A DNA stretch of 58,157 nt, the filler included, from Hydrolagus affinis (Eukaryota): NCBI GenBank assembly GCA_012026655.1. It is 3 parts of 3 records of this genome, joined end to end, with 100 filler letters (N's around TTAATTAATTAA, not from the genome) between each part and the next. Parts side by side here need not be neighbours in the genome. Positions count along the whole stretch, not along the records: positions 1 to 27,950 come from JAAILG010008597.1; 2 more parts are not named here. The stretch is one strand, 5' to 3'. The notes under the pieces are model-generated. The model had not been told where the DNA came from, searched no databases, and saw only the letters and a list, made by a program, of their open reading frames with translations. The number at the start of each line of letters is the position of its first letter. The stretch's first letter is position 1. The translations under genes were made by a program, and so were the position numbers. Shown here piece after piece: positions 1-27,950 of this stretch.

Positions 1-37
1 GCTATATCAAATGCAAGGATCATTATTATTAAATTAC

Positions 38-2638: not shown

Positions 2639-4969
2639 GTCCGTGGTTCAGAGATGAGTTACATGTAATTTGCAAAGAACAATATGGTTTTTAATTGCAA
2701 CTGTAATCAAACCTCAAATTGGCAGCAAAGAGGAGAGTTAAATAAATCCATATTATCCTGTTTTAGTTTTCCGCGTTCTTGCATCAATTCTACTTTATCA
2801 TAAGAACTTAATGACATCAGAAATGGTAGCCAAAAAAAGACCAAGCTCCATTTGGTTCACCTTTCACCTTTATAGTGGTCACATGCACATAAGTCACAAA
2901 ATATTTATGCACTATATCCCATAATGATCTTCCTAAAAGAAAACTTTCCAACCTGTTTTTGAAAGAATCAATACTTCACGCTTCAACTGTCTTTCTAGGG
3001 AACCTGTTCCACAGCTTCAATGTTTGCTCTGTGAAACAGTGTTTGTATAGATTTATTCTGAATTTACAAACCCCCACTTCAATCGCAAGCCTTGGCTCTG
3101 GTTTTATTATGTTGGACAAGTTGAAACAACCTGTCGAGTTCTATGTCATGGTGACCTGTAGTTCACTCGTTAGAGCACTTGCGTTGCAAATAAGAGACCT
3201 GGGTTCAATGGCCAGCATGGTGACATCTTGGGCAAATTTTCTTTGCCACACGCCTGATAATAATCTCTAAAAAAAAATTGTCATCTCAACCCAGGACTGT
3301 TCACGTGGACAAATTGGATTGGTGGATGAATATTATAAACTGAAATGAATACAAATGATTGAAAACAACAGTTATTGTTAAAATCAATGGATGGACAGTT
3401 TATTAGTGATGTTGTAGAAATATAGTTATATATTATGTGAAAGCATTTCCCCTGAGAATCTGTGCTCAATTTCAAATGTACCAGAGAGAATGACTCTTCT
3501 GACCCGAGCCGTGTAGAGTTGGCCACCATCGTGATCAAACTGATTCCATTGGACATCTACAACAACAACAAAATTACACTTGTGTAGTGCCTTTTACATC
3601 AGGAGGATATCCCAAGGTGTTGATCTACTATCATATCGAAAAGTCTATAAAATATCTCATAAACTATTTTGATTTTAAGAGCAGCGATTGTTATTATAAA
3701 GGAGAAGAAATAGGAGATTTTCTCCAACAAGGTATCAGAAAACGGAATGGATTGATGAATGAATAGTATTTTATTCGTAAACATGTATCAGTCAAAAAGT
3801 CCAATTACTAATTTCAAACTTAATTGCAGGTGGCACGCGCAGGACTATTGCACGTTAGGCAGGTTACCAAATCACAAAACAACTTGAAGAATAGATATGT
3901 AGAATGTAATAATAAAATAAGAACATAGCCAGATTTCAGATATTCTTTGTTTCAAAGATTACAACAACAACTTTGATTTATATAGCGCCCTCCACGCCGA
4001 ACGGCGTCTCAGAGCGCTTAGATATATATTTATAGTGGATTGTTCTATCTATATATAACCCGACCTCAGCTCGTGTCTGAAATACGGACTGTTCAGCACT
4101 TAGGGTCGTCGTCCCAACATGTAGGGTACTATACAAATGTAATTTTGTTGTTGCTATTTTCGTTATATGCAGAGTTTCCAGCGAAAAACATTTAGCTTAT
4201 GACAGTAAATCGTTGGAACGTCTTTCTGATGTGAAAGGCATTGTACAAGTGTAATTTTGTTGTTGTTTTTGGTTTGGCGCAAACTAATGTAGATACAATT
4301 TTGAGTAACAAAGTGTTTCACAATAAAAGACAATATGACAAGTATACATTCTATCATAAAATCCTGTGTTGAATTTAGAAACTCTGTAGTTAGAAATGGC
4401 GGGTGTCCAGAGGCTAATGCCTGATTGCAGATAGGAATATACAACCATGTTGTATACAGAAATGCAAAATACTGCAGGTGTTGGATATCTGAAACAAAAA
4501 CTGAAATCGCTGGGGACACTCAGCTGATCAGGCAGCATCTATGGGGAAAGGAAAGTAAGTCAACATTTTAGGTTCATGACTCTTCCACACAACTGTCTGT
4601 GCATCGATCAGTTTGTCTCATATATTTACTGTAGTCTTGTAGCACTGATTAAAGCACTCGGCTTCAAAGCAAGAAACCTGTGTTCAATTCATGGCAGAGC
4701 AAAACACAGCAAATTTCCTTGCTCCACATGCCTGAACCTGGGACCATCTACCTGATGTGAATGGTAATCTCTATAATGTAATTTTGTTGTTGTTGTTGAT
4801 AATAATTTCTCTACCCCCAAAAAAATATTGGTCACTACAATCGATGACTGTTTATGGGACACTACTGTATGCAATTAGCAACCTCATTTCAGGTAATGCA
4901 GGCAATGCATACACTGGAGGTTGAACAGAATATAGCATTATGATCAGGAATGATGATTTGCCTTATTTG

Positions 4970-5232
4970 GAGTCCTATAGCTCAGTGGTTAGAGCACTCG
5001 GCTTATAAGCACGAAACCAAGCTCTGATTTCAGGCAGTGTGAAAATGTGAACAAGTTTTGTTACTGCACATGTCTGATAATAATCCCTTCTTTTTTTTTT
5101 GATAATTTGAATCCATGACTGTTTGCAGGACACACTGCTGTTCACAATCAGCTGCCGCATTTTGCTTATACATCTAAAGTCAATTCCCTTCAGAATATAT
5201 TCAGTGAAGCACTTTGAGATAGCTAGAAGACA
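4970..5232 (+). mobile_element. Same SINE family
   Basis: GAGTCCTATAGCTCAGTGGTTAGAGCACTCGG head plus body. Confidence 0.8.
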
Positions 5233-6116
5233 TGAAAGCAACAACAACAACATAATTACGCTTGTATAGCGCCTTTCCTGTCAGGAAGAAGTCCAAAAGT
5301 GCTGGACAGTTATTGTTTCAGACACAAGCTGGGGTCACGAATGGAAATGATGTGGGGAAAGGGGGATACTTGGGGTGACTGATGGGACCAATCAAACCTT
5401 TCTTGAGACAGTACTAGGGATTGGGCGAGGTGGAGGGACTGCAGGATGACGTTTCAGAGGTTGGGGGGGCAGAGTTGCTGAAGGTTCATCTGCCAATGGT
5501 GGTGTGGGTGGGTCGGAGGCCGTGGAGAATGCTGGAGGTTGATGAGCAGGGTGTGGGCTGGTTGGTAGGGGGTTAAGAGGTCACACAATTTGGGTGACGC
5601 AAGGCCGTGGAGGGCTTAGGATGGACGACCAGGTTCTTGAATTGGATTCTCTGGGTGATGGGGAGCTAAGTTGGGTGAGGATGGGGAAGGTGAGGTAATC
5701 AAGCTTGGAGCAGTAGAGGACAGGGGCCACAAAGTTCTGGATTACTTGCAACCTATGGAGGGAGGAATTAGAAAGGCTAACAAGGAGGGCATTGGCATAG
5801 TCAAACCAGGATGTGATGAAGGCACGAATGAGGGATTCAGCAGCCTGGGGGTGAGGTAGTGGCGGAGTCAGGCAATATTATGGTGGTGAGGGATCATGGC
5901 TTGGATGTGGGTGAGGAAAGATAATTGAGAATCGAATAAGGTACCTAGGTTCCTGACTGGCTTGGTGAGGTTGAGTGTGGAACCATGGAGGTTGATGATG
6001 CTAGTGCCTAATGCATGAAGGCACTGGTGCTAGCCAATCAGCAGGGCCTCGGTCTTGTTGACATTCAACAGTAGAAAGTTAGCTCTCATCCAGGACTTGA
6101 TATCCGCCAGGCAGCC
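5233..6116 (-). mobile_element. L2 LINE 3' portion (host of the nested copy; continues at 7879-8020)
   Basis: Minus strand DIKSWMRANFLLLNVNKTE at about 6045-6105; (CAA)n tail near 5235. Confidence 0.8.
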
Positions 6117-7868
6117 TCATCCTCCTGCCTCTCATCGCACACCACCACCATTGCATCCCCCTCACCCTCCCTGTCATCAGCTCCTATCACGACTCCCTTC
6201 CTACATTCCTTCTCCTCCGTCTCTCCTTCGTTCCTCTCATGCACTATCACCCCAATGAAGCCCACCACCTGCTGCCCCGAACCCCTTCCTACCAACTTAC
6301 TGGTCATCCAGCTCCCCCTTCCCTGCCCACTGCTGCCTGACATCATCAACCAGTCCCTCTCCACAGGATTAGTTCATGCCCGCCTCAAAACTGCCGCCTT
6401 CACCCTACTCCTCAAAAAATCTTCCCTTGATCCCTCAAACCCTAGCCACTACCACCCTATTTCAAACCTGCCCTACCTTGCCAAAGCACTTGAATGCGTT
6501 GTTGCCAACCAACTCCACACCCATCTCTCTTCCCACTCCCTTTTTGAACCCAGCCAATCCGGTTTACGCCCTGTCCTCAGTACAGAAACTGCACTTGTGA
6601 AAATCACAAACGACATACTCTCTATCTGTGACCAGGGCTCCCTCTGCCTCCTTATCCTCATGGACCTGTCCGCTGGGTTCGACACAGTCAACCACACCAT
6701 CCTCCTTCACTGCCTGTCCTCCGTCATCCACCTCAGTGGGACCGCACTCGCCTGGTTCGAGTCCCACCTCACAAACTGCCAGCAGTACATCTCAATAAAC
6801 GGCTCTCCTTCTGCTCTCATCCAGTTACCTGCAGGGTACCCCAGGGATCCATCCTTGGCCCCCTCCTCTTCCTTATCTATATATTCCCTCTTGGGGACGT
6901 CATCCACAGACATGGGGTACACTTCCACATGTATGTGGATGACACCCAAATACCTCAAAGTTAGGTATTTCTCCACCTCACTTTTGTGATTCCCCCAGTC
7001 CCCTGATGTTCTGTCAGCCTGCCTGTCAGACATGAGGAGCTGGATGAGAACAAACTTCCTGCAGCTGAATGCTGACAAGACGGAAGCCATACTCTTTGGC
7101 TCTCGTCAATGTCTTCAATCGCACGGCTCTCACCTCCTCCACCTTCCCGGTCTGCCCCTAAAACTCTCCGAACCCGTGCGCAACCTAGGAGTCAGGTTCG
7201 ACCCCCAACTGCCTTCCTCCCCCATATCTGGTCCCTCACCAGCATTGCTTTTTTCCACCTCCGACGGATCGCCCATCTCCGGCAATATCTCTCCCAGAAA
7301 CCCTGGTCCATGCCTTTGTCACTTCTCGCATTGGACTAATCCAATGCCCTCCTGCCAGTCTCCCCTCCACAACAATCCATCAAATCCAACTCATTCAAAA
7401 CTCTTCCACCTGCATTCTCACTTCGCTCATCCAAACTTTGCTCCCCCATCACCCCAGTCCTTCCCAGACTTCACTGGCTCCCTATCCCAGAGAGGATCGA
7501 CTTCAAGATCCTCACCCTTGTTTTCCCAACCCTCCACTCCTCTACACCCCCCTACCTCTCCAACCTCTTCTCTCCTCAAACCAGCACCTGTTTCCTTCGC
7601 TCCACCGGGTCTGGCTTCCTGCTTGTTCCCCGAATCCTCCGATCTACCATCGGCAGCCGTGCCTTCAGCCACTACGCCCCGAGGCTCTGGAACTCCCTTC
7701 CTCACTCCCTTCATCTCAGCCCCTCTCTTCCCAGTTTCAGGACTCAGCTAAAGACCTTTTTCTGTGACCGCGACCCCTGGCTCGGTCCCGGGATCCGTTA
7801 TTGTGAAGCGCTCTGAGATGCCGTCTGATGTGGAGGGCACTATATAAATCAAAATTGTTGTTGTTGTT
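6117..7868 (+). mobile_element. L2-clade LINE, 5'-truncated, with RT remnant; nested inside another L2
   Basis: ORFs give [40 protein letters not shown] and NFLQLNADKTE with frameshifts; 3' end TGTGAAGCGCTCTGAGATG..(GTT)n. Confidence 0.9.
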
Positions 7869-7878
7869 GATATTTTTG

Positions 7879-8020
7879 TTGATGTTTGACAAGCAGTCTT
7901 TCAGGACAGTAGTGGTCCTGAAATCGAGGGTACGGGCAGAAAGATAGAGTTGGGTGTCCTCCACATATATGTGGAAGTTCACTCCATGTTTACAGATGAT
8001 GTTACTGATATCAACTGAAC
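7879..8020 (-). mobile_element. L2 RT fragment continuing 5233-6116
   Basis: NFHIYVEDTQLYLS (degenerate YADD) followed by DCLSNI, immediately upstream in RT order of DIKSWM. Confidence 0.75.
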
Positions 8021-11596: not shown

Positions 11597-14500
11597 TTAT
11601 GCGGTTTCTGCCTCCATGGCAGCTTTGTAGTTTCCGATATTTACCTCCGCATACTCTGAATTCTTGTCGTGGCGTTTAGCTTTTCCTGTTTTTTTGGAGC
11701 GAGGTAAATCCAGATCAGCGTAGGTCAGCTTGTCAGCTGCTGCTCCTTGCTTGGTCTGAAAACAACAATGTTTGGGATTGTCTTTTTGTTACTTACATAG
11801 ACAGGTGTACATAGAATGGAACTGGAAACTGACCAGCCTGTGTTTATACTTCACATGAGCTCCTTCCTTAACTATTTCATTCTGTAACTCTCTAATCGCT
11901 TCTCCTCATGTATGCAACAATTTTATGTTACATTATTTCAAACCCTTTATCCAACGGCCAATTGATTAATACATTTCAAACTGCGATATCTAGCTGCAGA
12001 TACATGGGCTGTAGATCCCAACGATGAGCTGACAGTGGCTTCCATGGGTTGGTGAAAATCAATGAATGCTGAAGTTCCTGATTGCTCTAAGGGAAATTGA
12101 CATTTGAAGATGTCTGAATGAGTTGTGATCCTCGTTAAATTATTTGCTGAATTGTTGATTCATATACAAAGATACGATCTTAGAATTTTACAGGCCAGAG
12201 GGCCAGTTTGCCCATTGTACACGGACTGTCAATTTGAAAGAATAATAAATATCGAGTCCCATTTACCTGCTTTTACCCAATGCTCCTTAAAGTTGATCCA
12301 TTTTACATATCCCCATGATTTTTACATAAATAAATTATATTGGTTAAATGCTTGAAGCCTGCAAAGTTTCCACAACTGAATTCAACATCAACGTGGTAGT
12401 ATGTTCGGGAGTGAAAGAGGAGGCTGGGAACAAAATCGGAGACAAACTATCACAGTCAATGAATCCGATTGAACAAACTCGTTCAATATTTTCTACGTGT
12501 TCTTTACCTGGGCGTATACTGTCCTCTCTTCTTGATGTTTAGGTCTTGGAGTTTTATTGGAACTTCTCAAATTCAATGTTACATAAGCCACGTTGTCACC
12601 CGCTGCTCTCTCCCCCATCTATAAACAAAGTATAGAGTAAAATGATTGTTCAGTTTACTTCCTAGGTTTGTGCTCTTTAAACATGGTATTGAATAAGTAG
12701 GGATTTGAGGCGAAACAATGGCTACTGTCAAATTCAAACATATAAAAGTTAAATACATATAATGTTCATTGAGTAGATCGATTGCTCTCTGGAGGTAGTG
12801 AAATTTAGGTTTCCAATTGAGGTTTTGCTTACCCGATCTTCAAGATTGCCCAATGGAGTCACGTTTTCTTTTGATCCTAAATATGAATACAATTTAGTTA
12901 ATGAACTATTTACTAAATTTCAACGTTAACACTAAAATAATGTAATTGTTCTATATTTTGGGATGGAATGTACAATCTCCATGTCACTCAGACATTTTGA
13001 AATTCTTAACATTGTGAATTCTTTCCCTTCAAAATTTTAACTCTAAATCTGGGCTACCCCTAAACACTATTCCTTGAATTTTTTCATTTTTCTCATGAGA
13101 AACCTGGTTGTTTCCTGCAATCTGGGCCTTGGTCTTTTGGCTACGACTAATAAAAACACGTTTTGGATATCACAATTTGAATGTAATTGAATTCTACTAC
13201 TTCTAAACACACACTTGGTGGTTGTCCCTGCATGTGTTTGACGCCATTCATCACTACAGCTACTTACAAATGCATATAATTTATTGTAGCTTAAGACGGT
13301 TGCAATGTATTAAGTCAGATTTAAGACATTGTGAGTTCAAAAATGAGAAATTCTGTGATACTAAAGTCCACCACCTGAAATTGTTACAGTAATAAATCTG
13401 TTGCAATAATTACACATAATTGTTATTGCATAACCACAGCATCACGGAACTCCACCTTCAAATGTTAAGTAACGAGCAACTTGCATTTTCTCTTTATTAA
13501 CCATTGGTGCATTCTTAGGTTTTATATCAACGTGTAATTTTCACAATTAATTACAATGAAATCGGAATTTTCTTACCGTTTTTCATTTTCATTTGGCATC
13601 GCTTCCCAATTATGATCAAAAGCACCAGAAATGCTAACACACCCGCAGCACATCCACCCCATAGTGAATAACGGGTTTTATTTCCACTCCCTGGAGAAAT
13701 AGTATACACTAAGGTGAGACTGTACATTGTGTAGGAGAAAGATCTGAAAAGTTATGCAGATCATTTATGAATTATATATTGTAATGATTTCATGTAAATT
13801 TTAAGACAGTAACCAGATTAACTATTATGACTAATCTTAATCTGTGTAATTATTAAGCAAGAATTAAGATTACTAGTAGACCTTCACTGAAAACAGTTTG
13901 ATATTTATGTAGCATAACACAGGTACAACTAATAACATCAACATTCACTTATTTTTATTATTTCTCTTGATATTATGACATAGGCGAGAGCGATACATAG
14001 AATACCAAAGCGGAACATTGTTTATCAGAGGAACCCTCACAAATACAATGCAGAAATTGTACAGTGAGATATCTGTACATAGTGGCATCTTATTGCAGTG
14101 ATGAAAGTTGCACACTTGGTATTAATATTTGATGAAGAAGTGTCTTGAACTGTCCCGAGATTTTGAAAATGATGTGGGTTTTGGGTGCCACCATTTATCG
14201 GTTAGTTTTAAGAAAATGCTTGAAGATTCAAATGGTATAATGTGGTTTAATCACCATCATGCACAACTCCCTTCTCACCATCTCAACACATTTGCCTCCT
14301 ATGCACCATGGCATTGCTTCAGGTCTCATGGGAGAGCAAGTAACATTCCATCCCTCAAGTCACAGAGCCGAACATTGGCTGTCCCTCAGGGCTCTAACCT
14401 CTACCTCTCCTCTTCACTATCTATATGTTCCCACTTGGCAACATCATCCATAGACACTTAATGCGCATCCACATGTATAAAGATGTATAGAAATGAAACC

Positions 14501-17016
14501 CAACTCTCCCATCTTCCTCCACAAACTGAATCCAACTTCATCCCGATAAGTGTGAAGCTTCAGGTCCTTCATGAGCTCCGACTTTCTTCACCTGAATAAT
14601 AATAATCTTTGCATTTTTCTATCGAATTCAATGATTAATGGTATTATTATCTCATGATTTTCATCTTAATCGCTTCAGATGAATCACTCAAATGTAGTTT
14701 TGTTGTTGGTGTTGTTTACGAATCAATGCAACTAAACATCCCTATGAGATTTGAATTAACAATAGTTGACTTTTTAAAATTCGCTTAGAATCTTACCTGT
14801 GTTAGATTGTGGGATGGTGTAGCTGGCAATAGCTGAATTCTGGAGGCTGATGTGAGACACCAGACAGGTATAAACAGATGCTATCTGGACGGATTGTTTG
14901 TCTTCAATAGAGCTAGAGACCTTATAGAGTTCCCATGAGTTCTGCTCTTCTATGGTTATTGTCTCTTCCATCTTTATTCCTGATGTTGGTGTAATTTGTT
15001 TTTCATCTTTATACCATGTGAGGGTGAAATCCTTTGGGTAAAATGCGGTAGTTTCACACACAAGAATCCGATGCTTAGTTGAACTTCTAGATAAAACTCT
15101 CAGTGGAGTTGGAGGAACTGTAGAATATATAATGGGGGGAAATCGTATTAAATTTCATCAATGAGTGGAACAGACTTTTTTTGGATTAATTCCTTTGCAA
15201 GATCATGATTCCTGAGTGCAAATGGAGGTTCTCTAGATACACAAATATCCCTCTCACAGCAGGAGAAGCCTTTCTCTTGCTTCAACTACTTTGTGGTTTA
15301 ACAATTAATGTTGATTCATAATCTTTGTCTTACATAGTGGAACTTCTTTAGCTCAGTGGTTAGAGCACTCGCCTTACAAGCATGAGACCTGTGTTCGAAT
15401 CCAGGCAGATCAGGGCAAAACCTTGGGCATGTTTCCTTACTCCACATGCCTAATAATAATCCCTAAAAAAAAACACCCAATAATAAAATTGGTCATTTTA
15501 ATCCACGACTGTTTGTGGGACACTGCTATGTACAATTGGCTGCCGCGTTTCGCCCACAAATATACAGTCAATTCACTTTACAGTATATTCTGTGAAGCGA
15601 TTTGAGACGTCTAGAAGATGTGAAAAGCGCTAAATCAAATGCAAGGATTATTATTATTATTATTACCAAGTGTAAGAATTAGCAGTTGGAATTCATTTCT
15701 GCAAACTCTCGGAACAGAGAAGATATAGAATTCTTGACAGGTGTGTGCATACTGTGTTCTTCTGGCTCAATTGGCAGCATTCTTGCTTCTGAGTTAGAAG
15801 GATACATGTTCAAACTCCGCGTTGGGACATATAATTCACATAGACTATGTTCAAACACCCAATGCAATGCTGTTCTTAGGTTGATAAATTAAACCTGGTT
15901 TAGTTCTGCCAGTTTTGTTGAACGTTAAAGATCTCATGTGAATAAATTGGCAGCTGTGTTCGCTTAGAAAGTACTCAGTCTCATGACTTCACAACATATC
16001 ATGTGCAATGCTTTGGGAGATGCTGTATCAAATGAATGGATTGTATTTTTTTTAGTTTTGAGAGGATTTGATCAGGTAAAGAGTGAAACACTGAATTTCT
16101 AACATGAGTCCGTAAGTTAAAATCTTTACCATAAAATGTTGGAGGTTGTATTCTGGTTTTACTGAAATTAGATTAAATAGTTTCTGAAGTAGAAGCTGTA
16201 ACACCCTCTCAAAGGAATTTTAAAGTCACGGTTGATTTGTATTCTACATGGATCAATTCTATAACTTTTGTAAAATTAGAAATATTTCATTAATTTGTCA
16301 TGAGTTGTATTATTTCATGTTTCATTTGTGCAGATTTTGAAATTAAAATGTTATTTCCACTTAATTTACTCTAATACCTTTATGTGAAATTTATTAATAA
16401 ACAATGTAAATCACTATATAGAATTCACCGTATTATTACTTTCAATGTAATTATCAAATATTTTCGCCCTTCATCCACACTCACCCTGCACAGTTAAGCG
16501 TGATCCAGGTCCTGTTCCAATTATTGATCCCTGAACCATCACTGAGCAGCGATAGACTCCAGAGTCCTGTAAACTCACATTCAGCTTGAGGAAGCCGCTT
16601 CCTTTGCCTTTCACAGCAAATGTTTTCCTGCTGTCCGCATGTGTATCCAAGTAGCCATCCACACCCTCTTTCTCCCACTGGAACTGCAGTACTGAATCGC
16701 CTTGATAGAAGGGTAACACACAGATGAAAGAGACATTTGTCCCTCTGACTGCAGCCACACGTTCGGGGATTTGAATCATTTTGACAAATGAAGCACCAGG
16801 AACTGTCAGAAGTTAAAGTCAAACACAGATATATCAGGTGATGTGCCGTGAAGAAAACCAAATGTGTAAAAGGGAAAAAAAACGCAGGTTTATATGATAA
16901 AGGCACATGGACACAAGCTTGCACATGTGTCATAGAATAAATAAGTTATTGCATAAACATATACCTGTTGAAATAAAATATAAGGCACATAGATAGAGAA
17001 AGACAACACTCCCCAT
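11597..17016 (-). CDS. Receptor gene 2: complete 372-aa V-C1-TM receptor with ITIM-bearing tail (inhibitory, SIRPalpha/NKp30-like)
   Basis: Seven GT-AG exons with consistent phases, total 1119 nt: 16965-17016 leader (MGSVVFLYLCALYFIST), 16485-16802 V (..YRCSVMVQGSIIGTGPGSRLTVQ), 14797-15117 C1, 13577-13690 TM (LWGGCAAGVLAFLVLLIIIGKRC), 12833-12876 (phase 1 to 0), 12508-12618 (..VAYVTL..TVYAQ), 11597-11755 (..LTYADL..SEYAEV..TA*). Confidence 0.88.
15343..15665 (+). mobile_element. tRNA(Ala-like)-derived SINE with L2-type tail, full length
   Basis: TAGCTCAGTGGTTAGAGC (A box), GTTCGAATCC (B box), conserved body and tail GTGAAAAGCGCT..ATGCAAGG(ATT)n. Many other copies are present in the window. 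Confidence 0.85.
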
Positions 17017-17080
17017 GTCTGACTCTGGCTCTGATCAGATGTAATACATAAACGTGGAGTGTTTGATATAGAGTAGGTAG

Positions 17081-17135
17081 CTGTGACACTGACTTCCTGT
17101 TTGTTTGGGTTGGTGAAACCTGGCTGGTGTGGTTG
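17081..17135 (-). promoter_or_regulatory. ETS + RUNX-like promoter motifs of gene 2
   Basis: CTGTGACACTGACTTCCTGT at 17081-17100 and TGTGGTT near 17128; conserved with gene 3. Confidence 0.5.
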
Positions 17136-17879
17136 TTGCAACACGCTTGCAGTAAAATTATGAAAATAATAATTATTCATAGTAATAGAGAAACGTCAAT
17201 CAAATATATAAACATAAAACTAGAGTTCAGCTTCATTATTGAGTCAGTGGTGCTTTCTCAAACTGGAAATATTGTTTCATGCGTCAATTCCGCTTGGAGT
17301 CAATAGTGTCAGAACAACAACAACAACTTTGATTTATATAGCGCCCTCCACGCTGGACAGCGTCTCAGAGCGCTTTACAAGGCAATCTGGTGGAATATTT
17401 CTGATGATAGTTCTCTCTGTCCCCTATTGATAGAAATTAACCTTTCCCTCTAAAGCACACACCGTCCCTCTAAACTACCAAATGATCATCCCATTTTAAC
17501 CTTACCCTTCTTATGCAAAATGCTGGCCACTCAACTTTGCTCACATCTTTTTCCCCACCGAGTCTTAGAGTTCCAGTTTCTACCCAAACACGAGACAGCA
17601 CAGTCAAAGTAACAATATTCTCAGTCTTTCTTTCAAAGTCCAATCATAATCTTTGTGTGTTCCCTCATATCCAAAGCCCTGGTCACTCAACTTTATTCCC
17701 ACTTTTTATTCCACTCGGTGCCAGAACCAGTAACATTAATTTTCTGCCCACACCATAGAAAGCCTAATCACATTACCCAATGATGTACTGCCTCTCTCTG
17801 TCTCTCTCTCTCTCTGTCTTTCTCTCTGCAACCACAATGCCTCTGCCGTCTTGTTCTCCTAGATGTTGTGCTACTTTCA

Positions 17880-18520
17880 AAATTGTCCACTGTCACTTCT
17901 TGACGACTTCTCTGCCCTCATCCCTCTCCTTGGCACTGCATGACCACATGCAGAGTATCCAAGAACTGTAGTCTGTGCCTTTTCCTCACTGCGTGCTCTC
18001 TCCCTTGATGATACTTACTATCCATAGACAAGTGATTAACTTTCACACTGATGTCAGTGAAAGCGTAATCTACTTTTCAACTTCCACTGTTGATTCCAGG
18101 TATATTGGTGCTCTATCCATTCGTGGCGTCCCGAACTTTTATCTCCATAGCTTGCAAAATAACCCATATGGCTTTGTCGTTTCTAATGCTAGGCTCCATG
18201 AACATATGTTCTCTAAACTCATCCAACTCCACTGGCTTCCCATCACACAGAGGTTACTAATTCAGGTACTCACCTGCAAAGTCCTCCATGGCCTTGCACC
18301 TACATACCTCTGTGATACCCTATCCCCCTATGAACCTGGCAATCCCTCCAGCCTATTTCATGTCCAGCATCTCACCCACACTATCATTGGTGGGTAGCTC
18401 TTCAGCCACTCTACCACCACACTGTGAAACTCCATCCCACTGTCCCTCCATCTCAACTCCACTTTTGCTTCTATCAAGACCAATCCCAAGACCTCATCTG
18501 TGCCTGTCTTATTGATCACT
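17880..18520 (+). mobile_element. Degraded L2 fragment
   Basis: LIQLHWLPITQR..VLTCKVLHGLAPTYLCD in ORF 17975-18397. Confidence 0.7.
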
Positions 18521-20009
18521 CTCCAAAGAATTATCGATTCCTTTCATGACTGTTTTTCATTTCTGTGTATAATTGGGATGCTTCTTTTTCATATAAGTAC
18601 AATGCAATGACAAACACAATGTATAGCACTGTACAAATAAAACATTTCTTCACAGATTCCTGGGAATTGCTTAGAATTAATCTGCCAACATGAAAAGAAC
18701 TGTACCAAATGCAAGGACTATGATTATTTTCCAACTAGGATACATACCATTTGTTTATCCTCAGATTGTGTGCATTGAAGTAATGCTGTTTAATTAACTG
18801 ATAACAAATATATTTTTGTATTTGTAATTGCTCAGTGATCATGATGGAATTCGTGGAAACATTTCTCTGAAGGTACTTCTCCAACTTATTACAATCGGTT
18901 ATAAGTTATGGCATTGAGTGGTACTGCAGAATACACTGTACTGTACTTATAACTTGGAAAGCTGTAAACTACACTTTTGTTTCAATTGTTTAAGTGTTGC
19001 AGCTTAGTTTTGCTGAGATCAAAAATTGTGTGTGTACCCAATACCTCTGCTGCACGATTTGTGGCCATACCTTCAAGCTGCTGCTGAGCCTCTGAGTCCT
19101 GTTGCCTAAATGTCTGTACCACAAAATCGTTTTTTTTAATGTCTTCAAATGATAGGTGTATATTTTCCACTTTGGCTGTCAATTCATCTTTCTCTCTGAC
19201 TGTGTTTCAAACTCACACTGGTTACTTAATGGCCACATACTGGTTTAATGTAGAATCTTTGGAGATGCCATCCTTCATATGAGAAGCTAAATGAAAGGTC
19301 ACCTTGTCAATTCAAGTAGAAAGTGAGGAACCCACGGTACTATTCAACAACAAAAGGGAGTTTCTCCCAGTTTACTTACAGTCAGTCCCCCAATTTGGTC
19401 ATTTGCTTTATGGCTAACTTGGGAATATTGCTGTGCACTAAAAACATAGTCAATAAACTTAAGAGTATATTCTGTGAAGTATATTGAGATAGCCTCCCAA
19501 ATATGAAAGAAGTTTGCATTCACATTGATTATACTGTCAGCACTGAGGTGAGAAGGTGAGATTTACTTAATGGAAGAGCCTCTGATTTTTAAACATGTGA
19601 AGGTTGCACTCATCAGGACTTGATATACAAATAGGAAACAAGGATTTGTGAACAAGGTTTGAGGCGGAGACTGAAAAGTGGATATTATTTGCATACATGT
19701 GGAATTTAACCTTGTCTCTCCAATGAATTCACTCAGCATAAGCAGGTTAATATTGTGAAGGAAAAGACCAAGGATAGAACTCCAATGACATGATTTTACA
19801 GACCCAATTACATTTGCAATTGATGAACCTGTGGGATGGACCAAGAGGAAACACAAACACATGGATTGCACAGAACTTGCCAAGGGGGAAGTTAAACGGA
19901 ATCTAGTCATGTTATTTGACAAATCACACAGCTGTAAAAACATTGCTAGGAGCAATAAACAAGACCAGCAGGGTGTTGTCCTATTTGCTGCAATACATAA
20001 GTACATTCA

Positions 20010-20375
20010 GAGTCTCTAGCTCTGTAGTTAGAGCATTTGCATTACAATCAAGAGTCCTGAGTTCAATTTCAGACAGGACAAAACGTTGAGCAAATTTCCT
20101 TACTCCACATGCCTAATAACAGTTCCTCAAAAACTAATAAATCGGTCATTTTAATCCTTGACTGTTTGTAGGACGTTGTTGTGCGCAATTGGCTGTTGCC
20201 ATTCGCCCAATATATACAACAACAACAACAACAAAATTGCATTTCTAGAGTGCCTTTCACGACGGGTGGACATCGATCAGTTCACTTTGCAGTGCAATTT
20301 ATGAAGCACTTTGAGACATCTGGAACATTTAGTGAAAAGCACTACATCAAATGCAAGTATTATTATTATTATTTT
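20010..20375 (+). mobile_element. Same SINE family
   Basis: Head, body and (ATT)n tail. Confidence 0.8.
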
Positions 20376-22912
20376 CATTATTACATTGCTCTGGTGAGAC
20401 AACATCTTGTGTAATTTATAGCAATATAGCCACTGTGACATAACGGGGCTTCCCTGTTCCAATGGGCAATGCAGAGGAAAACAGTGAGGATGAGTCACTG
20501 CGTTAGAGGAATATGCTTTGAGAGGTGTTTAATTGTTTATGGGATTGACAATCTAACCCCAGATCAACAGTTTAGATTAGAACAAAACAGCAGAATAAGA
20601 GGACATAGGTTTTGAGTTGCAAGGGCAATATCAGGATCGATACCCGGTTTTTCTTTACAGCAAGTAAAATAAAAATACCTGGGATAGGTTGGGAGGAAGA
20701 TAAGTTGAGGCCACCTCATGTAATGCACAGATTGAGGCTGTGATGGGCAGTTGGTGGGGTGGATGTTCAGAAAGGATGAGGGTCAGACAGGCAAAAGGGC
20801 GTTCCAGAATGAATACAAAATTAAGATGTATTTTATTTTTATGTTTTGCGTTAAACAGACACAAAATACACGCAGCTACAACACCACCTCGTGGAGTATC
20901 AGTGCCAACATGAAATATTGCGCCTAGTTTTTACACCTATTTTGCTACAATACATTACAATACATTGATGAAAACGTTAATAACCCGTGCTCTACACAGC
21001 CGGAGACTCTTGTGATAGATTTATCCTTTGATATTTACCCATAAGCAGAACGATTGGGGTTTTAACTCTTATTTTGTTTCATGTCGGGTATAATATCTGT
21101 AGATACACAAAATGCTCAATGGCCACGTTTCAACCGTTTCACTGCATGTGACGAATTCCACCACATTTTACTGCCTCCCCGCCCCTCCCCCTCTCTCTGT
21201 TGATATTTAAAATCCTCTCCTCCCAATATACCCCAGTTCTGACTAAAGGTCGTGGACAAGGTCAGCAGCAGAAATGAAGCAAATGTATATTTTGGAGGGT
21301 TAGATGTTATGTTCTAGACGTTCTGTACAAAGGTCCCCCTCCCATTAATGAATCTGATCAGTTTTGACCCCGATATCAAGCTGACCTCCAACAATACCTC
21401 ACAAGTGTTTCACCCCATTAAACATTTCTGTGCCATCTGACTTCCTGCCTCAGAGGGTTCAGCGAATTGACTTCGTTTTGAGAGTGTAATTCGTAAGTAC
21501 ATATACCGGTAGTCATTATAGCTGACGTCAAACGTCAGACTCAGACACACTACATTGGGATACAGTGGGCAGTGTGGGGCTGCAGGGCTGGTGGAAGGCA
21601 AACCGTGTCTTCTTTTACTTAACACATTCTTATATTCTTAAGTTGGATGTGTTTAATATATTTGCACATGTTCTCGCTATTGCTTTTCCCAAGAGCATTG
21701 ACCGATCATTATTGACAAAAGTATCCCACAGACCTCGATTGAACATTTTATTTATTGCAATTCGAAATGATGAATCGAAGCTGTTATGTTCAAATGTAAT
21801 GCACGATACAATCAACTTCATTTGAGATTTTACCGTATGGTATTACAGATATCACACAACAATAGAAATTATTTATAAAACACTAGAGCGGTGGGGGTGG
21901 ATAATGTAATATGTTTAATTGTAGGTTTCTTGGGGCAAAACTGACCAAACTGGTGTGTAATGTTTTGACCTGGGTCTGGGAAGAAAGTCTGGGAAACCAC
22001 CAACAGCAAAATTACGTTGGTTTTGTGCCTTTCATGTAGGAACCATGTCCCAAGATAACGGGATGTATAACTGCTGATATATAGCGAGTGAAACCAAAAC
22101 AAGTTGGGTGATATTTCAGTTATATTGCGACTCCTGTGTGGTGTAAGTCAAATGCATGAAATCCATTTGATACAGTCCTGTAGACTGGTTCATAATTTAT
22201 AATCTTCCTTTTGTTCCAGTCATTGCTTTTCCTCCAGCATAATTCAATCTCCTGGGATCATTTCTTCCTCACTTCACCTGTAACCAAACAAGCGGTGCCA
22301 GTGTGAATATCACCAATCCTTTGATTCTATGGTTAAGTGTCCTGATTGCTGCTTTCCACCCAAAACAACATTGAAGTTTCTATCTGAAATGTTCACAACG
22401 AGACTGGAAACGGAATATATTTTAGTTTAATTGCAAACAGCGACTAAAGATACTCAGACAACATTGATATCCCGCCGATCACTTGGAGATGGAAGCCGAG
22501 CCATCACATATTGACTGTCTGATTTGATTTGTCTCTAACATGGTATTAATGTATTCTAACACAAAATATTTTCAACTTATCTTGAAGAATGTCCTGTCTC
22601 ATGTAAGTAGAGCGTGTGGATGACGACACAAACATTAATATACAATATGAAAACAAAATAACAGATACGGAAGTTATTACACAGACATATTGTTCAATGT
22701 TGTTCCAGACGCCTGGAGGTTTGGAGGAGATATCTTTATATCCACTGATTATTAGAGAATCCTCCAATAAACAAATCATCATGTCCACAATCTAAACAGT
22801 CTGGTCCCGGTTACCGGTGGTTTCCTGTTCATTGATAATTTTATGGGCTACGATATCAATACAATAATTGTCAATGAAACCACAATATTATTTTGAAACA
22901 CATAATGCCTCC

Positions 22913-25900
22913 TTACCTTTCAAGTTGTGAGATTTTAACATGGTCAACAATGAAGATGGTCAACACTATCACTACCAAGAAACAGAATATAAACCGTAAA
23001 ATCATCATGTTCTCCGACATTCCACCATAATATCCATTCCTCCCAGAAGCTAGAAAACAAAAATCGGAATGTAGCATGTTTACGGGAGAATCAAAGGAAT
23101 AATTGGGCTGCAGACTTTCTCAATTAATTTCTATTGGAAGCTACCCATGAGATGGATGAATATATTCAGAGACTTGTCCTGAAACATCAAGGCAAAGACT
23201 GTTTATTAGTGATGTTATAGAGACACAGTTACAGATTGTGTAGGAGCAGTGCCCTTGAGACTGTGTTGCTGAGGTTCAACTATTACCAGAGTTTGTGACT
23301 GTTCCGACCAGAGTCATGGATAGTTAGGCAGCATCTCAATCAAAACTGATTCCATTGGACATCTACCATCATATAGAAAAGGCTATAAAACATCTCATCA
23401 ACTATTTTTTATTTTAAGTCCAGCAATTGTTGCTATAAAGGAGAAGAAGCAAAACATTTGTTCCAATGAGGCGTCAGAAAATGAAATAGATTCATGAATT
23501 AATACAATTGATGTTTTATTCGTGGATATGTATCAGTCAAAAAGTCCAAATACTGATTTCTCACCCAATTGCAGGAGGAGAGCTCAGGCTATTGCATTTT
23601 AGGCAGGTTACCAAATAACAAAATAAGTATATTTGTGAAGGAGAGATATTGAAATTTATTTAAAAAAAGAAGATACTCAGGTTTAAGATATCCTACGTTT
23701 CAAAGATTAAATAATTATAGTTTAAAAAGAGTTGGACGCGTCTTCTACTTTCGCTTCACCTACAATATTGTGCAATCCAGTGAAGCAACTAGCCTCAGAT
23801 GCAAGTCCAAGTGGGATATTTCAAAGCGAGTTGGATAATAGTGTTAAGGTGAATGGAAAGTGTCGGAGATACTGATTCAAATCCTGCCATCATTCCAGAG
23901 CAACAATAACCTACACTTATATAGCGTGCTTTCAGCAGGAGAGAGTCCTGAAGGAGACATTACTATGAGATTTGAATTAACAACAGTTGATTATTTAAAA
24001 TTTGTTTAGAATCTTACCTGCGTCAGGTTTTGGGATAGTGTAGGTGGCAATAGCTGAAGTCTTGAGGGTGGCGTGAGACACCAGACAGGTATAAACTGAA
24101 GTTTTCTGGACAGACTGTGTGTCTTCAATAGAGCTAGAGACCTTATAGAGTTCCCCCGATTTCTGCTTTTCACTGGTTACTGTCTCTTCCACCTTTATTC
24201 CTGATGTTCGTGTAATTTGAATCCCATCTTTATGCCATGTGAGGGTGAAATACTTTGGGTAAAATGCCGTAGTTTCACACACAAGATTTACTTGCTCAGT
24301 TGAATTAGAGAAAATCCTGATTGGAGTTGGGGGAACTGTAGAACAGATAATAGAGGAAAATCGTATTAGTTTTGACGAATCGGCGGGACAAGCTTTATTT
24401 TGATTCATTTATTTGCAGAATCCTGATTCCTGAGTGCAAATGGAGGTTAGTTTAGATACACATATTCCTCTCATCGCAGCAGAGCGTTCCTCCTGCTTTG
24501 ATTAATTTGTGGTTTTATCATTAATACTCCTTCATATTGTTGTCTTAAATATTATACTAAATGTAATGATTAGCAGGCGGAATTGATCACTGCTAACTAT
24601 CAAACACAGGATATAGAGTATTCCTGATGGCTGTGCACACGATGTTATTCTAGCTCAATTGGTAACTTTCTCGATTCTGAGTTAGAAGGGTTTGGGTTCA
24701 AGCTCCGTGTGCAGATTTGGAATTCATATAGTCTACGTTGAATCATCTGTTGCAATGCTGTTCTTAAATGCAAATTTAAACCTGGTTTAGTTATGACCGT
24801 TATTTGGCTAAAACGTTAATGATCTCATGGCCAAATTCAAATAGAGTATTGGTGGCCTGCCCAACAATTAATTTTTATTAAATGGTCTTCCACCCCATGA
24901 CTGTTCTGCAACATTTTTCTGCATAAATTGATGGCTGTGGTTCCTCATCGTGTACTCAGTCTCATGACTTTACAAAACATCATGTGCGGTGCTTTGGTAT
25001 GTTTCCAAGTTGCAGTATCAAATGAAAGGATTGTATTATTGAACTCTTGGGAGGTTTCCATTAGGTAAAGAGGGAAACAGTGAGTCTACAACAAGAGGCT
25101 AAAATTAAGATCATTATCATAAAATAAAGGATAGTGAATTTTGATGTTGCTGAGAGGCTGTTTGGTCGTAAACAAAATACTGGGTGAAGCACTTTCCTTA
25201 ACAGCTGTTGAAAGGAATTTTCATGTCATGATTTCTTTGTCTTCTATAAGTATTTTGGATGATATACTCGTATGAATAATATGGATAAAATCTGTAACCT
25301 TTGTAACATTGTCATAGAGCGGATCGACTTCAAGATACTCAATCTTGTGTTTAAATCTCTCCACTCTTCTGCACCTTCTCTAACTCTCCGACATGGTCTC
25401 TCCTCACTGCAGTCTACTGTGTCCAGTCTCCTGCTTATCCCTTAATCCTCCGCTCAACCATTTGTGGCTCTGCTTTTAGTCACTAAGGGCTGAAACATTC
25501 GAACTACTATCCTTAACCCCTTCTCTTCACCCCCTCCTTTTCCATATTCAGGTCGTGCCTGAAGATCTTTCTCTTCTACCATGCTTACGGTTACCGTCCC
25601 CCTTGGCCTCGGGCTCCGCCATTCTGAAGCACTCTGACATACCGCCTGGTGTGGAGGCCACGATATAAATGCAAATTGTTGTTGTTATAAAATTATTCGT
25701 GAAGTTGTAGTGAGTTACAGTATTTTGTGTTTTAGTTGTGTGCAGTTTGAAATCAAACACATGATTCTCACATAACAAAAGCCGCTGAAACCTTGGTCCA
25801 TGCCTTTGTCACCTCTCGGCTGGACTATTGCAACTCTCCGGTCTCCCCGCCACCACAATCCACAAAATCCAGCTTATCCAAAACTCTGCCACCCGCATAC

Positions 25901-27029
25901 TCACCCGTTCTAAGCTTCGCTCCCCCATTACCCCAGTCCTTGCCAGACTTCACTGGCTCCCTATCCCAGAGAGGATCGACTTCAAGATCCTCACCCTTGT
26001 TTTCAAATCCCTCCACTCCTCTGCACCCCCCTATCTCTCTGATCTCCTCTCTCCCCAAACTAGCACCTGCTGCCTTCACTCCTCTGGGTCTGGCCTCCTC
26101 CATGTTGCCCGAGTCCTCCAGTCCACCCTCGGTGGCCGTATCTTCAGGCACTATGTCTCGAGACTCTGGAATTCCCTTCCTCACTCCCTTTGCCTTGGCC
26201 CCCTCTCTTCCCAGTTTCAGGTCACAGACCTTTCTTTTCGACCGCGCTTTTGGTCACCTTTCTGCCCCTGCCCCTGGCTCGGTCCCGGGATCCGCTATTG
26301 TGAAGCACTCTGAGATGCCGTCCGGCATGGAGGGCGCTATATAAATCAAAGTTGTTGTTATAACATACTCTAAAAACTAATATGTAACGGTTATTAATGC
26401 ACAAATAATCTAAAGATCCAAATAACATTCACTGCATCTATTACATTTTATATAATTTTCACATAGTTTTTTGCTCTTCATCCACACTCACCCTGCACAA
26501 TTAATTGAGATCCAGGTCCTGTTCCAATTACTGATCCCTGATGGGTCACTTTGCAGCGATAGACCCCAGAGTCCTGGAAACTCACATTCAGGAGCTGGAA
26601 GTAGCTGCTTCCTTTCTCTTTCACACCAAATATTTTCCTGCTATCCACAATTGTATCTAAATAGCCGTCCTCACCCTCCTTCTTCCACCGCACCTCCACT
26701 CCCGAACCGTTTTGAGAGGAGGGAAAGATACAGATGAAATTGATGTTTGTCCCTTTGATGGCAGCTAAACGTTCTGGGAGTTGAGACACTTTCCCTGGAG
26801 AATCACCAGCAACTGTCAGAAAATAACGTCAAACAATGATTTCTCAGAAAGTATGCTATGGGGAAAAGCAAAGGAGTAAAACAAAAAGAACTAGGTATAC
26901 TGTATATGATAAATGGCACATGGAAAGAAGCTTACACACATTTCATAGAACAACTGACATGTAAAATAGACATATACCTGTTGAAATAAAACTCAAGACA
27001 GACAGATACAGAAAAACAACGCTCCCCAT
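22913..27029 (-). CDS. Receptor gene 3: 275-aa V-C1-TM receptor with Arg in the TM and a minimal tail (activating type), close paralogue of gene 2
   Basis: Exons 26978-27029 leader (MGSVVFLYLSVLSFIST), 26492-26812 V (..YRCKVTHQGSVIGTGPGSQLIVQ), 24018-24335 C1, 22913-23049 TM/stop (ASGRNGYYGGMSENMMILRFIFCFLVVIVLTIFIVDHVKISQLER*). Junctions are phase 1. The 3' end is less certain because the stop overlaps a possible donor site. Confidence 0.82.
25317..26358 (+). mobile_element. Two L2 3' fragments (25317-25687 and 25779-26358) in the V-C1 intron of gene 3, absent from gene 2
   Basis: SRLDYCNS, LARLHWLPIPERIDFKILTL and L2 tails ending (GTT)n; flanks align with 16250-16400. Confidence 0.85.
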
Positions 27030-27093
27030 GTCTGACTCTGGCTCTGATAAGCTGTAACTCGCAAATGTGGAATGTTTGATATAGAATAGGCAG

Positions 27094-27140
27094 CTGTGAC
27101 ACTGACTTCCTGTTTATTTTGGTTTGTGAAATGTGGTTGC
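27094..27140 (-). promoter_or_regulatory. ETS + RUNX-like promoter motifs of gene 3
   Basis: CTGTGACACTGACTTCCTGT at 27094-27113 and TGTGGTT at about 27132. Confidence 0.5.
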
Positions 27141-27713
27141 TGTAGTTGTTGTGATTTGACATCCATTTCTACAATTAAATTGTGAGAATAATAATGCTTC
27201 CTGTTAATAGCAGAGGAAGGTTAAACACACATCTAAATATAAAACGTAGCATTCGGAAAGGTTGTTTTAAGCATCAACTACACTTGGAGTCAATAGGGAC
27301 AGAAATAAGCAATTTCTGCTGACAGTTCTATCCGTGCCAAATTGATAGAAATAAATCATTCCCTCTAAAGCACATCCCGCCCCTCCAAATACCTAAATTA
27401 TCGTTCCATCTTCACCTTACCTTTTGTATCCAAAGACCTGACCACTGAACTTTGTTCCCACCTGTTTCTGCACTGAGTCCTTGAAGTCCGGTTTCTACCG
27501 AAACCCGAGACAGCACAGTCAAAGTAATGATAATACACTCTCTCTTTGGTTCTCTTTCACTCTGCAATGTCGGCCCTTTGGCTTTTTGTATTGCTTTGTA
27601 TCCAAGGTCCTGGTCACTCAACTTTGTTCCCACGTTTTACTGCACTCGGTGCTAGAACACCTCAAGCTAAGCTTGTGCGCACAGCATAGAAAGACTAGTA
27701 ACAGAAAACAAAG

Positions 27714-27715
27714 TC

Positions 27716-27760
<45 letters not shown>
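27714..27760 (+). repeat. (GTCT)n microsatellite; the paralogous position upstream of gene 2 is a (CT)n tract at 17790-17826
   Basis: Direct reading of the sequence. Confidence 0.9.
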
Positions 27761-27950
27761 TTCTGTCTCCATCCATTTTTGTTGCATTGCATGGCCACCT
27801 GCAGTTTCCAAGAACTGTATTTTAGGCCCCATTCTATTTCTCATTTATCTCTTTGTGATACTTTCCACGTACAAGCTACTAACTTTCGTATTTATGTCAA
27901 TCAAAGACCGCTCTTCTTTTCAACTTCCACTGTTGATTCCAGGTCCACTG

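Follow-up and report, generated by a model that had tools for sequence, protein, structure and literature searches.

A 58,157-nucleotide stretch of Hydrolagus affinis DNA (GenBank assembly GCA_012026655.1; hereafter the window, filler included), of which positions 1 to 27,950 come from JAAILG010008597.1, contains two adjacent immunoglobulin (Ig)-domain receptor genes, gene 2 and gene 3, and part of a third, gene 1. We think it likely that genes 2 and 3 are tandem members, and gene 1 a truncated third member, of a non-rearranging leader-V(J)-C1-transmembrane (TM) family which appears to be restricted to cartilaginous fishes, and that genes 2 and 3 form an inhibitory/activating pair. Mammals, birds and teleosts are well known to have paired receptors, and cartilaginous fishes are the oldest lineage with antibodies, T cell receptors (TCR) and a major histocompatibility complex (MHC). 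To our knowledge, almost nothing has been described of natural killer (NK)- or myeloid-type receptors in cartilaginous fishes, and a literature search found no report of SIRP-like or paired V-C1 receptors in this group. The original prediction, made from the sequence of the window, had placed such a pair at 11597-27029, and the range is exact, running from the last base of the gene 2 stop codon (11597) to the A of the gene 3 ATG (27029).

Gene models and the duplicated unit

Genes 1, 2 and 3 all lie on the minus strand, and the open reading frames (ORFs) listed for the window include three V-like and three C1-like frames, in which Pfam confirmed V-set and C1-set domains. Self-BLAST of the window aligns a unit comprising upstream DNA, promoter, leader, V exon, intron and C1 exon of gene 2 (14736-18101, minus strand) with its copy in gene 3 (23957-27944, minus strand) at 74-82% nucleotide identity, which bears out the predicted homology of the leader, V, C1, introns and promoter; for these shared parts taken together the figure is 76-82%. 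The homology stops 61 nt 3' of the C1 exons, and no similarity between the two genes was found 3' of these exons in the self-BLAST. By tblastn the TM and tail exons of gene 2 have no copy anywhere near gene 3, and the reciprocal search was equally empty; in the absence of any cross-match by either method the TM/tail modules are unrelated, as had been proposed. The genes adjoin in one cluster, with about 5.9 kb between the gene 3 stop and the gene 2 ATG, and their order is kept in Callorhinchus milii. These comparisons show a duplication that spanned the promoter, leader, V and C1 exons, each copy bearing a different, independently conserved signalling module. All exons of genes 2 and 3 have canonical AG/GT borders and consistent phases, and the joined frames are open. 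The acceptors, all ending in AG, are rich in pyrimidines, every donor reads GTAAG, GTGAG or GTATAT, the Ig exons follow the usual phase 1 pattern, and the Cys/Trp and C1 hallmark residues are intact in both genes.

Gene 2 (17016-11597, minus strand) has seven exons encoding 372 amino acids. A promoter box, AAACAGGAAGTCAGTGTCACAGC (17080-17102), with an ETS/PU.1-like GGAA core, lies about 65-85 nt upstream of the ATG. Exon 1 (16965-17016) encodes the leader MGSVVFLYLCALYFIST and ends in a phase 1 donor, GTATAT; exon 2 (16485-16802) encodes the V domain (Pfam V-set) with a germline-joined J-like motif, GTGPGSRLTVQ; and exon 3 (14797-15117) encodes the C1-set domain (Pfam C1-set, E 1e-9) with a YTCLVSH motif. 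Exon 4 (13577-13690) contributes a stalk, an uncharged TM segment, LWGGCAAGVLAFLVLLIIIG (13605-13664), and a basic stop-transfer sequence, KRCQMKMKN. A direct splice from this exon to the first exon with an ITIM (immunoreceptor tyrosine-based inhibitory motif) would be out of phase, which is resolved by an intermediate 44-nt cytoplasmic exon 5 (12833-12876; GSKENVTPLGNLEDR) that shifts the phase from 1 to 0. This exon is one of only three phase-compatible candidates and has the best donor of them, GTAAGC. Exon 6 (12508-12618) carries the first tyrosine pair, VAYVTL (12574-12591, ITIM) and TVYAQ (12508-12522), the latter becoming TVYAQT through the next exon. The second pair, LTYADL (11711-11728, ITIM) and SEYAEV (11642-11659, ITIM consensus), is in exon 7 (11597-11755), which ends with the stop codon at 11597-11599. 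The tail is about 100 residues long, and in both pairs the tyrosines are spaced 23 residues apart. The C. milii protein XP_042196354 reproduces the TM segment, the 44-nt exon (as GSKGNLTQLGKLEDQ) and both tyrosine-pair exons, and thereby validates the seven-exon model; the neutral TM and the long tyrosine-motif tail, both part of the original prediction, are conserved in the C. milii orthologue, all four motifs included. Nothing came from Pfam searches of the tail exons apart from a match below threshold, in homologues, to SIT, a SHP2-interacting adaptor (E 0.02-0.03). At its outer edge the uncharged TM has a Cys (GGCAAG, AGCAGGG) that most ITIM-tailed members keep and that the Arg-TM type lacks at this position; it could be a site of dimerisation or acylation.

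Gene 3 starts at 27029 on the minus strand, has four or five exons and encodes about 275 amino acids (275 in the four-exon model). Its promoter box (27093-27115) is identical to that of gene 2. Exon 1 (26978-27029) encodes the leader MGSVVFLYLSVLSFIST, exon 2 (26492-26812) the V(J) domain (61% amino acid and 78% nucleotide identity to gene 2) and exon 3 (24018-24335) the C1-set domain (70% amino acid and 85% nucleotide identity). Exon 4 (22913-23049) encodes a stalk and the TM segment MMILRFIFCFLVVIVLTIFIV (22946-23008), followed by DHVKISQLER and a stop. The Arg codon of the TM segment, at 22994-22996, places the charge about three residues into the membrane from its outer boundary. An Arg in the TM and a short tail had both been proposed and are found, with a tail of 10 residues in place of the roughly nine first given, or 12 with a candidate mini-exon described below; in either form it is without tyrosine motifs. 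Reading through the C1 donor leads to a stop after seven codons in both genes (GKILSEF in gene 2, 14774-14797; GKILNKF in gene 3, 23995-24018). A read-through form ending GKVLKDF is annotated in C. milii as the 235-amino acid protein XP_042196356, with intact TM and ITIM exons downstream (L002 13133-15439); this form is a secreted isoform or else an artefact of annotation.

Genes 2 and 3 and two paralogues from C. milii (four genes, two species) have the promoter box unchanged, and the flanking bases differ. Judged by the ETS consensus, its ETS/PU.1-like core would bind such a factor, and it would fit leukocyte expression. Concerted evolution of the two ectodomains was considered and is weakly supported, C1 identity being 82% within species against 78-80% across species; identity of the V exon is about 78% in every comparison, within or across species.

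Conservation in cartilaginous fishes

Over 15.22-15.245 Mb of C. milii scaffold MU249845.1 (locus L003) the sequence runs collinear with the window, non-coding parts being 70-80% identical. In shared order come the gene 3 intron with the TM exon, then intergenic blocks, then the gene 2 orthologue LOC103185896 and last a gene 1 counterpart, gene 1 being syntenic with the gene downstream of LOC103185896. At about 746-862 of L003, 9.4 kb upstream of LOC103185896, an exon encodes ...MMIFRFILCFLVVIVLTVFIVDHIRIKPLER followed by a stop. It shares 71% protein identity with the gene 3 TM exon, with a ratio of non-synonymous to synonymous substitution rates (dN/dS) of 0.53, and is in none of the coding sequences (CDSs) listed for the fetched C. 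milii locus. Products of the window are 60-89% identical to retrieved proteins and identical to none, and C. milii gives the best matches, which supports a chondrichthyan origin. Nucleotide identity to C. milii is 82-92% in the TM and tail exons, against 77-79% in the V and C1 exons and 70-78% in introns. Exon 6, the first of the tyrosine-pair exons, is the best conserved exon of gene 2 (86% amino acid and 92% nucleotide identity), and the gene 2 TM exon has 70% amino acid identity to that of LOC103185896. The proposed layout of paired receptors, in which similar ectodomains in adjacent genes are joined to an ITIM and immunoreceptor tyrosine-based switch motif (ITSM) tail in one case and to a basic TM with a short tail in the other, is supported by the sequence and is syntenic in C. 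milii. The pair goes beyond chance, with the tail reproduced in XP_042196354 and an Arg-TM exon at the orthologous place.

To survey the family, the V exon of gene 2 was compared by HMMER with 1.84 billion cluster representatives, giving 158 matches at E <= 0.001, and the source was looked up for 30 of the 150 matches listed. Every single-V match with a source looked up is chondrichthyan, and the genera include Callorhinchus, Heptranchias, Heterodontus, Mustelus, Scyliorhinus, Carcharodon and Chiloscyllium as well as Hemiscyllium, Leucoraja, Mobula, Hypanus, Pristis and Hemitrygon. Three multi-V proteins of unchecked source (P0058, P0100 and P0114) and two weak bony-vertebrate matches stand outside this result. 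Word-indexed protein searches gave significant matches to chondrichthyan relatives and the two weak bony-vertebrate ones, and to no SIRP, NKp30 or nurse shark NCR3 entry. From these searches the V(J)-C1 family appears to be restricted to cartilaginous fishes.

Arg-TM modules are present in chimaera, six shark genera and rays. Nine TM sequences were aligned, from the window, the C. milii locus and seven proteins (one each from C. milii, Heterodontus, Heptranchias, Carcharodon and Scyliorhinus, two from Chiloscyllium). They share the pattern R[FLS]xL...(I/V)(V/M/F)(D/E)H, with the Arg about three residues into the membrane, and seven of the nine fit R-x16-(D/E)H. The exceptions are Heptranchias P0067, with Gln for Arg, and Chiloscyllium P0127, with one residue fewer between Arg and DH. 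In Heptranchias P0186 and P0187 the TM ends in NH instead of DH, and ray proteins have a variant TM, WIVRG.... ITIM-pair tails were counted by a permissive regular expression in 37 of the 112 retrieved sequences with the C1 hallmark motif. Both signalling modules, inhibitory and activating, are thus independently conserved across cartilaginous fishes, and the comparisons indicate that the predicted activating/inhibitory pairing is conserved across sharks, rays and chimaeras. Several annotated relatives skip the C1 exon (P0002, P0079/P0086, P0041, P0073 and P0126), so that V is joined straight to the TM and the product resembles single-V receptors of the NKp30 type. The C1 exon skipped in C. 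milii LOC103185896 is itself intact (L003 11143-11460).

The automatic names given to members by NCBI are inconsistent. They include SIRP-alpha-like (PTPNS1-like), SIRP-beta-1-like, tapasin-related-like, CD276, NCR3 ligand 1-like, Ig lambda-like and MHC II beta-like, with at least seven unrelated names overall. The suggestion that automated annotation could miss the pairing holds for C. milii, where the Arg-TM exon lies outside the listed CDSs, but not for catshark and white shark, in which Gnomon captured this exon.

The white shark Arg-TM member, P0077, maps to 103.767 Mb on chromosome 19 (locus L004, CM029971.1, 103.757-103.783 Mb). The gene table of Verissimo et al. 2023 puts this position in MHC class III, among unlabelled LOC genes between NELFE and ATF6B. 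The same table places five NCR3-labelled white shark genes beside AIF1, at 101.9-102.3 Mb, and leaves the interval 103.67-103.89 Mb unlabelled (Verissimo et al. 2023). P0077 is about 1.5 Mb from these NCR3-labelled genes beside AIF1. Its surroundings are spanned by a 197-kb gene model, LOC121291302, which may merge several Ig genes. The coordinates of the catshark family gene are not in the table of the catshark MHC chromosome.

Surroundings of the two genes

Gene 1 (36-2060, minus strand) is a more divergent member, 68-78% identical to C. milii P0036/P0168, and is cut by the window edge. Its V exon lies at about 1744-2060 and its C1 exon at about 36-350, and the TM and tail are beyond the piece. 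Between genes 1 and 2, a remnant of a further copy at 3324-3961 is about 75% identical to the gene 3 C1-TM intron and also matches L003 57-633, and a weak C1-like fragment is found at 4362-4460 (tblastn E 0.001); no TM exon follows these remnants. A second Arg-TM exon was looked for near 3000-3400 and was rejected, as the homology to the gene 3 intron stops before any TM exon.

A GC-rich block at 5000-8000 (48-53% GC, compared with about 37% elsewhere) shows a sharp flip in GC skew and contains an ORF (6255-6989, plus strand) for a reverse-transcriptase fragment (Pfam RVT_1, E 4e-12); it is probably a decayed long interspersed element. An interspersed repeat of about 570 bp occurs at 7297-7862, 25316-25686 and 25787-26359, the long copies being 66-80% identical, and 60-bp end pieces of it, 86-95% identical, are found at 3959-4019, 17317-17375 and 26303-26363. 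One or two copies inside the V-C1 intron of gene 3 make this intron about 0.8 kb longer than that of gene 2. The microsatellites (CT)n and (TCTG)n are located at equivalent sites upstream of genes 2 and 3 (17792-17827 and 27716-27758).

Proposed signalling and alternative readings

Gene 2 would be the inhibitory member of the pair, with its uncharged TM and a tail of about 100 residues holding two tandem tyrosine pairs. After ligand binding, Src-family kinases would phosphorylate the tail tyrosines, on which phosphatases of the SHP-1/SHP-2 type could dock through their tandem SH2 domains, as they do with SIRP-alpha. Gene 3 would be the activating member: its Arg sits about three residues deep in the TM, a conserved (D/E)H marks the inner boundary, and the tail has 10-12 residues. 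According to the RDD rule an Arg near the top of the TM assembles with zeta-zeta or FcR-gamma dimers, as in CD89, NKp30, NKp46 and TCR-alpha (PMC13107469), and the gene 3 Arg may likewise pair with the aspartate pair of a zeta/FcR-gamma-type dimer bearing immunoreceptor tyrosine-based activation motifs. As FcR-gamma is missing from a survey of shark genomes, a point taken up below, a CD3-zeta-like chain is the best guess and the most likely partner, and would give Syk/ZAP-70 signalling.

In its resemblances the family is apparently a mosaic, since the V, the C1 and the tail each recall a different system: the V(J) domain is NKp30- or antigen-receptor-like, it is followed by a C1 domain, and the tail is SIRP-alpha-like. 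Among structures in the PDB the C1 exon matches IgM C-mu, SIRP-alpha domain 2, MHC II beta2, UrIg2 and TAPBPR. A family profile built from 40 sequences aligns with SIRP-alpha domains 1 and 2 in one stretch (E 2e-31), and scores alongside UrIg2 and antibody chains. When an AlphaFold model of a full-length C. milii homologue was compared with Swiss-Prot models by Foldseek, three SIRP-alpha proteins came top (E about 2e-16), closely followed by CD276, PD-L1, Skint, B7H6, TAPBPR and butyrophilins. The V domain of gene 2 is of the short type and is modelled by AlphaFold with a predicted local distance difference test score of 90. Taken alone, its Foldseek neighbours are CD79b, TCR and Ig V domains, NKp30 and shark VNAR, and SIRP is not in the top 30. 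NKp30 ranks no better in this search (E 1-3e-7, TM-score 0.71-0.74, 22-24% identity) than CD79b, the TCR/Ig V domains or VNAR. Single-domain phmmer and V-only profile searches of PDB sequences were dominated by multi-Ig proteins and gave no useful ranking of families.

Other known systems share parts of this organisation. PIR-A/B, LILR, KIR and the teleost NITR resemble genes 2 and 3 in being clustered, with similar ectodomains and an ITIM tail in some members against a charged TM and short tail in others, but PIR, LILR and KIR have C2/I-type domains, and NITR a V plus an I domain, not V(J)-C1. PIR-A and CD89 pair with FcR-gamma via an Arg high in the TM segment (PMC2213385, PMC13107469). Genes of the leukocyte receptor complex (LRC)/FcR type and homologues of classical Fc receptors were reported absent from sharks in a 2014 survey (PMC4016189). 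UrIg and UrIg2 are, like this family, non-rearranging V(J) plus C1 proteins of cartilaginous fishes, with UrIg linked to MHC class III, and the UrIg2 structure 9dmx is matched by the C1 exon (E 8e-7) and by the family profile (2e-36). UrIg2, however, is built as V-C1-C2-C3 in disulfide-linked, antibody-like dimers, and no dichotomy of ITIM and charged TM has been described in it (PMC12227049). Tapasin-related protein (TAPBPR) shares with the family a TM placed after a C1-set domain, and its C1 is moderately similar (E 9e-6), whereas the tapasin N-terminal domain is missing from genes 2 and 3, which start with a leader and then V; the tapasin-related name is an artefact of best-hit naming.

Two other readings would place the pair in a system already known. 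SIRP-alpha and SIRP-beta1, like genes 2 and 3, have an N-terminal V(J) followed by C1-set sequence, and their activating member has an ectodomain closely similar to that of its neighbour, a basic TM residue and a short tail. The tail of human SIRP-alpha has four tyrosines in two pairs, as has that of gene 2, whose pairs include LTYADL and SEYAEV. Together with the profile and full-length Foldseek scores above and the SIRP names assigned by NCBI, this would make genes 2 and 3 true orthologues of tetrapod SIRP-alpha and SIRP-beta, binding a CD47 homologue, a reading we regard as quite unlikely. SIRP has two C1 domains; genes 2 and 3, like every homologue inspected, have a single C1 exon between V and TM. 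The activating SIRP-beta1 has a mid-membrane Lys, through which the activating SIRP form pairs with DAP12, in contrast to the Arg near the outer leaflet and the (D/E)H end of gene 3, a difference which argues that the pairing arose independently. B7, butyrophilin and TAPBPR score almost as well as SIRP, no SIRP is among the top neighbours of V alone, and no bony-vertebrate SIRP was retrieved by the V-domain HMMER or profile searches, in which the single-V matches of looked-up source were chondrichthyan, leaving aside the two weak bony-vertebrate matches and the unchecked multi-V proteins. Orthology or synteny with SIRP is not demonstrable, and the one relative that has been mapped falls within an MHC class III interval and not within a region known to match human 20p13. 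Shark NCR3 (NKp30) genes have reportedly been described by Kinlein and colleagues in 2021, with eight divergent subtypes, and if genes 2 and 3 belonged to them the pairing would be a known property of that family. NKp30 resembles the family in its short, non-rearranging V that includes its own J motif (GxGxxLxV, frequently carrying an NGT site), and resembles gene 3 in its Arg high in the TM segment and the short tail of its activating form. It is among the nearest non-rearranging Foldseek neighbours of the V domain; an exhaustive V search reaches P0146, a protein with an NKp30-like GTGNGTRLEV end; V-only isoforms with the C1 skipped are annotated (P0002, P0079); and a white shark member maps within the MHC class III interval. 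We nevertheless hold this reading to be unlikely. NKp30, whose gene is placed beside AIF1/LST1 in MHC class III, is without a C1 domain, whereas genes 2 and 3 carry an intact C1-set exon and the V-C1 family includes ITIM-tailed members; searches among named proteins gave no nurse shark NCR3 entry; and the white shark genes labelled NCR3 are those beside AIF1 at 101.9-102.3 Mb, the interval of the family member being unlabelled (Verissimo et al. 2023).

The interpretation of genes 2 and 3 as an inhibitory/activating pair has several points against it. FcR-gamma was not found in shark genomes in the 2014 survey (PMC4016189), which leaves the adaptor uncertain. The gene 2 and gene 3 models were built here from the genomic sequence of H. 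affinis. The ectodomain dN/dS is high (0.74-1.05), as expected of immune receptors that evolve fast but also of relaxed constraint. In the Arg-TM member Chiloscyllium P0062 the tail runs to 38 residues and closes with an ITIM-like VGYDAL. Finally, the C-terminus of gene 3 is uncertain, its stop TAA (22913-22915) being embedded in a consensus donor, AG/GTAAGG (22911-22918). The orthologous exon of C. milii has the same arrangement (CG/GTAAGA, L003 about 858-866), and at the equivalent place catshark has a donor AAG/GTGAG, from which the annotated model goes on to a four-codon exon 16 kb away, and white shark AAAG/GTAAG, followed by small terminal exons. In both holocephalans the frame ends ER-TAA exactly at AG/GTAAG, and annotated models of two sharks (L001 16299-16308, L004 14120-14130) use the donor in a different phase. 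The donor is probably functional, and its conservation in sharks means that gene 3 may have a fifth, tiny terminal exon missing from the four-exon model. A weak candidate (21871-21882, minus strand) has a strong acceptor, ccaccgctctag, and is phase-compatible, changing the final R to SVL and a stop; its acceptor is not conserved in C. milii. Just downstream, an AATAAA polyadenylation signal (21751-21756, minus strand), about 1.16 kb from the TM exon, falls in the non-coding block with the highest conservation (21708-21867, 80% identical to C. milii), and the 3' end of the transcript is likely to be near it. Given the stop within the donor, intron retention and splicing would give almost identical proteins in chimaeras.

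That gene 3 is not activating, its Arg-TM exon being spliced onward to other signalling content or the product being a non-signalling decoy or secreted form, seems to us improbable, even with a stop overlapping a donor conserved in catshark, white shark and C. milii, the longer tail of P0062 and the short secreted form (...GKILNKF stop) expected from C1 donor read-through and annotated in C. milii as XP_042196356. Splicing to a distant ITIM tail, which would have spoken for it, was not found: tblastn detected no homologue of an ITIM exon between the gene 3 TM exon (22913) and the gene 2 promoter, and the white shark and catshark models append only 4-9 residues (SVKD or DLVQKEKCN). The conserved AATAAA is a further point against it, and a function residing in the TM is suggested by the conservation of Arg and (D/E)H, which extends beyond a single class of cartilaginous fish. 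It is very unlikely that either gene, or both, is an unexpressed or decaying copy within a cluster of rapid turnover. The ectodomain dN/dS, the nearby fragments of another copy (3324-3961 and 4362-4460) and the repeat inserted in the gene 3 V-C1 intron would fit such decay, but the seven exons of gene 2 and four of gene 3 are all open, with splice sites, Cys/Trp and C1 hallmarks intact, the promoter box is invariant and the signalling exons are conserved above the intron level.

On the preferred reading, that genes 2 and 3 are an inhibitory/activating pair, the principle of paired receptors is familiar and the members are already public under muddled names. The scattered automatic names, with the absence of the Arg-TM exon from the C. 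milii CDSs, have made the pairing invisible in current gene sets. A bolder and rather unlikely extension is that the V(J)-C1 family is the main germline-encoded paired receptor system of cartilaginous fishes, in place of the LRC/FcR-type families missing from the 2014 shark survey, and is a non-rearranging relative of the antigen-receptor precursor, at least partly MHC-linked, with an NKp30-like V domain, a C1 domain, a SIRP-alpha-like tail and an R-x16-(D/E)H module coupled to a CD3-zeta-like chain. If true, activating/inhibitory pairing on a V-C1 scaffold would date to the base of the jawed vertebrates. A conserved dichotomy on non-rearranging V(J)-C1 receptors would provide concrete genes for studying how innate recognition is controlled in sharks and chimaeras, and would be relevant where V(J)-C1 ancestors of the antigen receptors are debated (UrIg, NKp30).

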